Shown: positions 2,291 to 4,733 of the stretch, in pieces
How the letters are laid out: the number at the start of each line of letters is the position of its first letter
How positions within the stretch are numbered: the first letter of the stretch is position 1
NCBI GenBank assembly: GCA_013416795.1
Contig: RQSC01000204.1
Coordinates: 1 to 5,453 of the forward strand
Direction of reading: 5' to 3'
From: Prasinococcaceae sp. CCMP 1430
Lineage: Eukaryota; Plantae; Prasinodermophyta
DNA: 5,453 nucleotides
The notes under the pieces: model-generated
What the model saw: only the letters and a program-made list of their open reading frames with translations
What the model was told of the DNA's origin: nothing
The model's database searches: none
Program-made: the position numbers and the translations under genes

Positions 2291-2643
2291 ATGACGGCCG
2301 TAGTCGACCCATAACATAATTTTTTGTGGAGCACTTGCACAACAGCGCGCTCGGGGCAGCGACGGCGCCCTCCCCCCCCGCCACCCCGCCCCGCAAACCC
2401 ACCCCTCAATTCCGCGCAAGTGAGTCGAGAGCACGCCAGCTTGCGGGCGCTCATGGGGCGGGCAGAAGCTGTGGGGGGCCTCGCGGCGCGCGCGTCTCCA
2501 GCGCGGGCGCGCGCTACAGCTCGCGGACGCGGCGCTTGGAAGTGCAACCCCGCGTCGGCTTTTGCGCGGAAGCGCCTGTGGTGCGCCTGCGCGGGCGCCA
2601 GAGCAGGCCGCGCCCGCGCGTGACGGGCGCGGCGGAGGCACCC

Positions 2644-3315
2644 ATGGCGTCGCGTGTCGCGACCAGGCCACGCGCCCGCGCGCACTTCCCCGCGCGCCCC
2701 CGTGCGCGTCGTGTTCGCGCGCGTGTGGGCATGCAGGCGCCCGGGAAGACGAAGGCGAAGGCCGAGGCGAAGGCCGAGGGCGCGTTCAGCGACGGCGTTG
2801 CCAAGGCGATGCTTGCCACGTACGACCCCACGAAGAACAAGAAAATTGTCTATGGTGTGTTCCAGCAGGAGGTCGATCCCGCAGTGCTCGCCGATACTAG
2901 CGACGAGACGCTCGAGGCGCGCTCAGCAGCGCGCGCGGCGGCCGCCGACCAGCTCGTCAACATCGGTGCCGAAGAGCGCACGCGCCGCACGCGCGTCGGC
3001 GCCGTCATGAGCGTTGCCACCGTGGCACTCGGTGCAGCGCTCTTCGGCGCGGAGATGAGCCCTGTGGTGAAGGCGGGTGCCATGTACTTCCCCATCGCTC
3101 TCAGCCTAGGCTTCCTCGAAAGCGGGGCCAAGGGGCTCTGAAACATCGCGCAGGCGGGTGTCTGGGACGTGGACGGCACGGGCCTGCGCGAAATCGAGGA
3201 CAAGTCCGTGGCTGCCGCGCTGCGCGAAAAGGTGAACGCCTTCAATGTGCGGAGCGCTGTGACGAGCGCGGCGATCGCAGCAGCGTACGGCGCTGCTGCG
3301 GCGCTGGCCGCGTAG
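2644..3315 (+). CDS. Probable membrane selenoprotein (MSP-like), about 223 aa, with UGA 3139-3141 read as Sec in GLUNIAQAG
   Basis: After the TGA the frame continues NIAQAGVWDVDGTGLREIEDKSVAAALREKVNAFNVRSAVTSAAIAAAYGAAAALAA to TAG 3313-3315; 29 of the first 33 post-TGA codons end in G/C. There are two hydrophobic helices before the TGA and one at the C-terminus, and a SECIS lies downstream. Start at ATG 2644 is tentative (ATG 2731, or an acceptor at 2736, are alternatives). Confidence 0.82.
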
Positions 3316-3382
3316 GCGGTCGCCGCCCCCGCCTCGGTGCTCGCGCCGAGCAGGAGCGCTCCGAGGCTTTTGCGGGAAGCGC

Positions 3383-3462
3383 CGCGGGCTCGCATGACGG
3401 CCAGAGGCCAAAGCCCTCACCCAACCGAGGGCGCCTCGTTGGCCCGACACCCTCTGCCCGCG
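3383..3462 (+). promoter_or_regulatory. Eukaryotic SECIS element, form 2 (3'UTR RNA structure)
   Basis: Helix I CGCGGGC 3383-89 / GCCCGCG 3456-62; core A-UGAC 3394-98 / CGAC 3445-48 (tandem G.A/A.G); helix II GGCCAGAGGC 3399-3408 / GCCUC-gu-UGGCC 3433-44; unpaired AAA 3410-12; apical ministem GCCCUC 3413-18 / GAGGGC 3427-32 with an 8-nt loop. Confidence 0.88.
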
Positions 3463-3485
3463 TCCTCCCCGCGCGTTGTGTTTGC

Positions 3486-3490
3486 TGTAA
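3486..3490 (+). terminator. Candidate TGTAA polyadenylation signal for the selenoprotein mRNA
   Basis: TGTAA in an AT-rich patch 24 nt after the SECIS. UGUAA is the established poly(A) signal of many chlorophytes. This would place the SECIS inside the mRNA. Confidence 0.5.
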
Positions 3491-3672
3491 TATTGGTATT
3501 GGTGCACTGTGTGTATCCCACGCGCACGCTCTCGGCCGCCCAATGCGCTCGATCGGAATGCGCGCCACGAGCGTGCTCCGAAGCGTTGCTCGCACTCAGC
3601 ACGGCTCTGGCTCTTCTTACGTCGGTATGTGTACACTCAACCTGCCGCACGGGCGCGCGCGCACGCTCACTT

Positions 3673-4530
3673 CTACTCGTTGCCCCGGCGCGGCTGCAGG
3701 CCGGGCATGAGCTGCGGCAACGCGTCAGGCCTGCTGTCGGTGCCGGAGCCACCCTTGCCGTTGGAGATGAGGCACACGTCATACAGGTCGCCAGGCCGCT
3801 CGTAGATCTCGCACGAGATGTCCGGGCCGAAGAAGCGCTCGATCTTCTCGCGGCGGCCCTCCCAGCCGGCAATGTCCACCTGCGGGCAGCGGTGAGGCGC
3901 GGCCTCGATCGTCAGGTACCGGCCCGAGGGCGGCGCGCGCGGCGGCGCATGCGCGCGGGCGAGCGAGCGAGATGGCGCTTGCGCGCACCTTGGGCGACTC
4001 AAAGACGAGCACGAGCGCGTAGAAGCCGTTGATCACGCGCTCCTGCAGCCCCACGAGCTCCGGCGAGTCGCGGCGCGCAATGCCGCCCGCGGCGCGGCGG
4101 CCGAAGAGGAAGATGCGCTCGAGCGCCTCCTCGAGGTGCTGCTCGTCACCGTAGCGGTAGCGCGTGGTGTCCGACTTGACCTGCACCTGGATGTCAGTGG
4201 CCTGCGAGGCGCGCAGCTTGTCGGCGTCCTCGTACGTGCGGCAATCGAGCGGGTCCAGCTGTGCGTACTTGAGCGCGCTGCCCAGCAGCGAGATGATGAA
4301 GCCGTAGATGAGCAGCGGCGCCGAGCCGCTCTGTCCGGGCAGGTAGTTGAAGAAGGCGCCGAAGCCGTACAGGAGCATGGAGAGCCCGACGGTGACACCG
4401 ATGGTACCGAAGGACAGCTCGGAGATGTTGAGCCCATCCTCCTTCTCGACGACCCTCGTGCAATCGCTGTACGCCGGAGCGGTGCGCGGCGCGCCCGCCG
4501 GCGCCTCCGCGGCGCGCGCGGCCACGCGGC
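3673..4530 (-). CDS. APE1: APE1 (Acclimation of Photosynthesis to Environment 1) / DUF2854 / Slr0575-like thylakoid membrane protein; exons 4530-3989 (5' partial) and 3879-3673
   Basis: Family motifs YGFGAFF, LLIYGFIISLLGSALKYAQLDP, TTRYRYGDEQHLEEALERIF, YALVLVFE, and after splicing KIERFFGPDI...YDVCLIS; stop TAG at 3675-3673. The N-terminus is lost in the N gap. Confidence 0.92.
3880..3988 (-). other. 109-nt phase-0 GT-AG spliceosomal intron of APE1
   Basis: AAG|GTGCGC...CCTGAC...CCGCAG|GTG on the - strand; removal gives ...FESPK-VDIAGW..., restoring the APE1 C-terminal motif. Confidence 0.9.
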
Positions 4531-4733
4531 NNNNNNNNNNNNNNNNNNNNNNNNNNNNNNNNNNNNNNNNNNNNNNNNNNNNNNNNNNNNNNNNNNNNNN
4601 NNNNNNNNNNNNNNNNNNNNNNNNNNNNNNNNNNNNNNNNNNNNNNNNNNNNNNNNNNNNNNNNNNNNNNNNNNNNNNNNNNNNNNNNNNNNNNNNNNNN
4701 NNNNNNNNNNNNNNNNNNNNNNNNNNNNNNNNN
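4531..4733. other. Assembly gap (203 N)
   Basis: Run of N; covers the APE1 start and transit peptide. Confidence 1.

Follow-up and report, generated by a model that had tools for sequence, protein, structure and literature searches.

In characterised SECIS elements, the AUGA and GA strands of the core form a kink-turn to which SBP2 binds, and SBP2 recruits eEFSec carrying Sec-tRNA. The letters of the core have been summarised as UGAN on the 5' side and KGAW on the 3' side (the SECISearch3 paper, PMC3753652), and the rules of SECISearch place the AA motif 10-13 nt after the core and the GA of the 3' strand 15-39 nt after AA (PMC2375036). The described gene family closest to the one considered here is 'hypothetical protein 3' of Ostreococcus, which the supplement of Lobanov et al. 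(2007; PMC2375036) gives as a selenoprotein family with members in O. tauri and O. lucimarinus, the O. lucimarinus gene bearing a SECIS; in that genus GUGA is the typical form of the 5' core (PMC2375036). The genome paper of Prasinoderma coloniale reports many selenoproteins.

We analysed a 5,453-nt stretch of DNA from Prasinococcaceae sp. CCMP 1430 (contig RQSC01000204.1; hereafter the window). Taken together, the evidence below makes it highly probable, at roughly 93%, that plus-strand positions 3383-3462 encode a functional eukaryotic type 2 SECIS, situated in the ~190-nt 3'UTR of a ~900-nt mRNA for a predicted small membrane selenoprotein of the 'hypothetical protein 3' family. The hairpin is an ordinary SECIS of a known algal selenoprotein family, and it reveals no new mechanism.

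The anatomy of the element can be followed from base to tip. Helix I consists of seven Watson-Crick pairs (3383-3389 with 3456-3462) evident in the sequence and in agreement with both the predicted fold and a covariance-model match described below; it is followed by a 5' internal loop of 4 nt (3390-3393) and by the 5' core AUGA at 3394-3397, which is identified by the sequence and by the alignments to Rfam SECIS_1 and to our own model, R2. Helix II comprises 10 bp (3399-3408 with 3433-3444) and carries a 2-nt bulge, G3438/U3439, on its 3' strand. Above it lie the unpaired C3409 and AAA (3410-3412), 12 nt past the core, and a 6-bp apical ministem, or helix III (3413-3418 with 3427-3432), closed by an 8-nt loop (3419-3426). 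The descending strand returns through the 3' core CGAC at 3445-3448, with GA at 3446-3447, and a 7-nt internal loop (3449-3455). AUGA and GA directly flank helix II, placed for tandem G.A/A.G pairs, and the spacings of 12 nt from core to AA and 33-34 nt from AA to GA both fall inside the SECISearch limits. An earlier note, made from the letters alone, had read all of the SECIS landmarks in this order, and each was found at the position it had given.

By minimum free energy (RNAfold), the segment folds at -41.7 kcal/mol (z = -4.43), a stability that none of 200 shuffled sequences equalled. The fold recovers helix I and the ministem, as well as the upper part of helix II including the bulge; at the SECIS core it adopts a slipped Watson-Crick register in place of the non-Watson-Crick core, as expected because the energy model is without sheared G.A pairs. 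In a fold of the entire 3'UTR (3316-3509), the hairpin stays a separate module. The structure thus shows a stable helix I, an internal loop, helix II and an additional apical helix, the features of a type 2 element, and it is the extra helix above the AA motif that assigns it to this type. Compared with the eukaryotic type 2 SECIS of Rfam (RF00031), the element is alike in helix I, internal loop, AUGA/GA core and a helix II of ~10 bp, as well as in the AAA 12 nt from the core, the extra apical helix, the location in a 3'UTR and an alignment over the full length of the model. It differs in having CGAC where KGAW is usual, in the one-sided 2-nt bulge of helix II, and in its Rfam score of 18.9 bits, which lies below the 35-bit gathering cut-off.

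The gene upstream of the hairpin is read on the plus strand. Its coding region 5' of the Sec codon extends over 2644-3138, where ATG 2644 is the first ATG inside the RNA-derived contig and ATG 2731 is an alternative start; the in-frame UGA at 3139-3141 is read as Sec from homologs and motif, and a further 57 codons, recognised by homologous C-termini, occupy 3142-3315 with a TAG stop at 3313-3315. Counted from ATG 2644, the predicted product has 223 residues, with Sec as residue 166. When the 136 residues ahead of the TGA were used in an exhaustive HMMER search, 142 relatives were found, most of which end exactly at that codon, while the few that read past it have either Cys or 'W' there, the latter apparently TGA translated as Trp by a gene caller. 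The window's 57 codons after TGA share 32-53% identity with the C-termini of these read-on homologs, whether Cys or W. Five public predicted proteins (P0037, P0049, P0069, P0085 and P0114) carry W at the Sec position, in the context G-L-W-N-[IV]-A-Q, and in these entries alternative-code gene calling apparently hides the selenocysteine.

A C-terminal family alignment (A2) was used to find related metagenomic loci. TGA occupies the same codon in 63 of 68 such loci, and TGC (Cys) is found there only in L047 and L048; in two others, L068 and L075, the TGA is displaced by one to five codons but keeps the same G-[LI]-stop context. Neither Pfam nor NCBIfam returned a match for the selenoprotein. Its motif GLUNIAQAGVWDVDGTG matches that printed for Ostreococcus 'hypothetical protein 3' (G-L-U-N-I-A-Q-A-G-V-W-D-V-[DE]-G), and the feature used to recognise the family is found in the window, where two hydrophobic segments precede the Sec-bearing G-L-U-N-I-A-Q-A-G-x-W-D-V-[DE]-G-[TA]-G. 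Further, the translation of one metagenomic locus, L027, is identical to the printed O. lucimarinus hypothetical protein 3 from FFALGF through the C-terminus. On these sequence grounds we assign the gene to the Ostreococcus 'hypothetical protein 3' family, already published in 2007.

In green algae, TGTAA serves as a polyadenylation signal. A candidate TGTAA lies at 3486-3490 (+), and three independent RNA-derived contigs end 12-19 nt beyond it, at 3502-3509, the approximate 3' end of the mRNA. These Logan contigs come from three studies and differ from the window at 0-6 positions: X1 covers 2608-3509 (902 nt, the entire contig), X2 covers 2751-3502, and X3, from a marine metatranscriptome, covers 2702-3506. 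Each spans UGA 3139, TAG 3313 and the hairpin, placing the hairpin in the 3'UTR of the same transcript as the in-frame UGA. Transcription was read from contigs whose ends and strand go beyond what such assemblies prove, the strand being taken from the ORF. In all four runs the 109-nt intron of the neighbouring gene (3877-3985) is spliced out, and the contigs therefore derive from RNA; the next contig, that of the convergent neighbour, begins at 3609. The hairpin had been placed in the earlier note between the true stop at 3315 and the TGTAA signal, which these positions confirm, and a transcript ending before 3462, named there as grounds for giving up the element, is not what the contigs show.

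Differences among strains were also located. Of the 3'UTR variants, those at 3325, 3340 and 3345 precede the hairpin and that at 3425 (C>T) falls in its apical loop, leaving the helices and core free of any; past the UGA, variants occur at 3180 and 3228, both third codon positions.

We then considered how readily such a hairpin arises in DNA of this composition. A scan of both window strands for all landmarks together required NTGA, AA and GA spacings per SECISearch, 4 or more pairs stacked at the helix II base, a helix I of at least 6 bp, and an upper stem no less stable than -20 kcal/mol. It returned exactly one candidate, and none of 300 dinucleotide shuffles yielded any. With loose thresholds, a SECISearch-like pattern gave 13 reverse-strand control matches against 23 forward matches, and the pattern was kept only for the strict shuffle test; the pattern scan also missed many orthologous elements whose AA motif is degenerate or lies 1 nt outside the permitted spacing. 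Against Rfam, the only match of SECIS_1 in the window is at 3383-3462, over the full model length, with E = 6.7 across 4227 families, or ~0.0016 for SECIS_1 alone; no other Rfam family matches this hairpin.

For a comparison closer to the gene itself, covariance models were built from orthologous elements. The first, R1, combined three near-identical orthologous elements with a hand-written structure and was used to gather 12 elements from different loci. As a test of the window hairpin R1 proved too narrow and was set aside, scoring it at 16.5 bits against 16.6 bits for a spurious GC-rich match; it gives 79 matches at E ≤ 10, GC-rich DNA producing many weak covariance-model matches. MAFFT alignments of orthologous SECIS (A3 and A4) misaligned the 3' halves, and no model was built from them. 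The second model, R2, was made from 12 SECIS elements of orthologous metagenomic loci with the window left out; in this training set 97% of cells are paired, and both partners have changed in 19 of the 23 pairs. R2 matches exactly 3383-3462 (+), at full length, with 32.0 bits (E 2.1e-6, a rough calibration with filters off), and the next-best match scores 15.6 bits. Infernal's default filters discard this true match, and filters were turned off, also for 50 kb of GC-rich algal DNA, in which the best spurious match reached 20.8 bits. Infernal with SECIS models had been suggested in the earlier note as a check; the gene-specific model scored the hairpin well above every spurious match, the general one below its cut-off.

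Beyond its training set, R2 detects elements downstream of the same gene in L010-12 (45.5 bits), L016-18 (23-29 bits), L053/54 (19.6 bits), L068/72 (18.5 bits) and L075 (21.9 bits), and it finds no SECIS in 12 other TGA-form loci. For 15 short contigs left unresolved by the pattern scan and R2 (save for a weak candidate in L057), Rfam reported no SECIS_1 at E ≤ 10. The two Cys-form loci, L047 and L048, served as a negative control: even unfiltered, R2 matches nothing there at E ≤ 0.3, as a replacement of Sec by Cys would lead one to expect.

Covariation in orthologous 3'UTRs, another check proposed earlier, bears the structure out. Pattern scans and folds place type 2 SECIS-like hairpins shortly past the stop in many related loci. 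With the window among its 10 rows, alignment A10 has 96.4% of cells paired and both partners changed in 22 of 23 pairs, figures that favour the model's structure to the extent that A10 was fitted to it. No shuffle among 500 paired as highly, and slid registers pair at 35-47%. The changes include all 8 pairs of helix I and all 5 modelled pairs of the ministem, and the window element keeps 21 of 23 model pairs at 34-60% sequence identity to its orthologs. The slid controls, together with this low sequence identity, argue that the pairing signal in A10 is real.

Ostreococcus 'hypothetical protein 3' and the metagenomic orthologs of that gene (L008-L036) share family and Sec codon with the window; their elements likewise have a long ministem and sit on the strand of the gene, ~15-450 nt past the stop. 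Alongside their 34-60% identity, they differ from the window element in that many have GUGA instead of AUGA and several have CAA or CA instead of AAA; the window's AUGA and clean AAA are in this respect nearer the general consensus than many orthologs. Its CGAC and 2-nt bulge had been described beforehand as slightly non-modal. Against UGAN/KGAW this holds, as CGAC departs from KGAW at both flanking letters, the consensus being a preference and no requirement. Within this gene it largely does not: the 5' UGAC (UGA plus C3398) is invariant in all 12 aligned SECIS, C precedes the 3' GA, at the K position, in 8 of the 11 orthologous elements, and 10 of these 11 have a 3'-strand helix II bulge of 1-3 nt, separated from the core by 3-5 bp, L027 being the one without it, unlike the window. 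In this alignment, the C.C juxtaposition beside the G.A pairs is the norm for this gene's SECIS. After the 3' GA, 6 of the 11 orthologs have U and 5 have A, C being confined to the window; U.C, where the others have U.U or U-A, is the sole oddity of core or bulge peculiar to the window element.

This last feature raises the possibility that the hairpin is a real SECIS in a weakened state, in which the U.C and C.C flanks of the core and the bulge cut binding and much translation stops at UGA 3139, yielding a 165-residue product. A core outside the KGAW consensus (PMC3753652), a C after GA that is unique among 12 aligned elements and an Rfam score of just 18.9 bits all point that way, but the C before GA and the bulge are what orthologs normally have, the published Ostreococcus-type element included, and the AAA and the spacings are canonical. 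Moreover, conservation extends over the 57 codons past the UGA, with both strain changes there at third positions, and efficiency is not readable from sequence; we regard such weakening as unlikely.

Two further readings separate the hairpin from the UGA altogether. In a region of 74% G+C, a hairpin could by accident contain TGA, AAA and GA and have no recoding role, and the many weak model matches under R1, one of them a spurious tie with the element itself, speak for this reading. Set against this are the empty shuffles of the full-landmark scan, the gap between 32.0 and 15.6 bits under R2, the lack of any match in Cys-form loci, and orthologs that share position, strand and architecture, with covariation; we consider coincidence very improbable. 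The stem-loop might instead be a 3'UTR structure with another function, in mRNA stability, 3'-end processing or as a small-RNA precursor, unrelated to the UGA: it lies 24 nt upstream of TGTAA, and Rfam scored the long hairpins of two related loci as miRNA-like. However, all 12 elements carry an invariant, identically placed UGAC...GA, a SECIS-specific arrangement, the element accompanies TGA-form genes and is absent from TGC-form genes, and Rfam offers no other family for it, leaving such a role barely any credence. A functional SECIS serving UGA 3139 remains our preferred reading. The hairpin had been put forward as independent evidence for the Sec call, and since the 3'UTR that holds it is transcribed and the UGA of the gene falls at the Sec/Cys position of a published family, that support is valid.

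By analogy with characterised elements, we infer kink-turn geometry, protein binding and actual recoding at UGA 3139. AUGA (3394-3397) and GA (3446-3447) would come together in a tandem sheared G.A/A.G core, a kink-turn flanked by C.C and U.C. SBP2 would bind this kink-turn and recruit eEFSec with Sec-tRNA to the ribosome at UGA 3139-3141, 255 nt upstream of the core; Sec would then be inserted, and translation would run through 57 further codons to the TAG at 3313-3315.

The element supports annotating UGA 3139 as Sec, with a gene model that reaches TAG 3315 and is not cut at the UGA, as most database relatives are cut at the Sec codon. A third green-plant phylum thereby contributes a documented SECIS, one whose 3' core departs from the usual consensus, and the element and its ortholog alignment (A10, model R2) can help to tune SECIS searches in GC-rich algae. 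More tentatively, at somewhat less than even odds, the SECIS of this gene may descend as a true ortholog from before the split of Prasinodermophyta and Chlorophyta, having retained, beyond the generic landmarks, the C.C and the 3'-strand bulge of 1-3 nt as gene-specific traits; CGAC would then be a natural working core outside UGAN/KGAW, and pattern filters tuned to that consensus would under-call algal selenoproteomes.

At least three related loci carry hairpins of a different build, which by eye have a UGAC...UGA[UG] core. L059 (915-1015) and L044 (990-1090) are more distant relatives, with different sequence flanking Sec and a longer C-terminal tail; right after the stop each has a long hairpin with an AUGAC...CUGAG core and a helix II of ~17 bp, with no unpaired AA 10-13 nt from the core, which Rfam scores as miRNA-like only. 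These may be SECIS variants outside the usual spacing rules. L009, a TGA-form ortholog, has a 3'UTR hairpin at 2745-2815 with a GUGAC...CUGAU core, no AA motif and the apical region CUCACGCAG; both the pattern scan and R2 missed it.

Elsewhere in the window, a weak Rfam match to the archaeal C/D-box snoRNA sR53 at 887-953 (+; 24.9 bits against a cut-off of 49, E 0.012) lies inside the upstream coding region and is probably due to chance. In that upstream ORF (356-2290, +), a long coiled-coil-like stretch rich in Glu, Ala and Arg leads up to a terminal ELIP-like, chlorophyll a/b-binding domain (Pfam, 5.1e-11); in the corresponding region of Tara contig L002, the gene caller gave only a 215-residue Chloroa_b-bind protein. 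The 5' intergenic region contains a (CG)n microsatellite of ~18 repeats at 211-247. On the minus strand, the convergent neighbour at 3673-4528 is a gene for a DUF2854 protein (Pfam, 5.7e-32); the spliced RNA contigs confirm its 109-nt intron, and an assembly gap of Ns at 4531-4733 breaks the 5' part of this gene.
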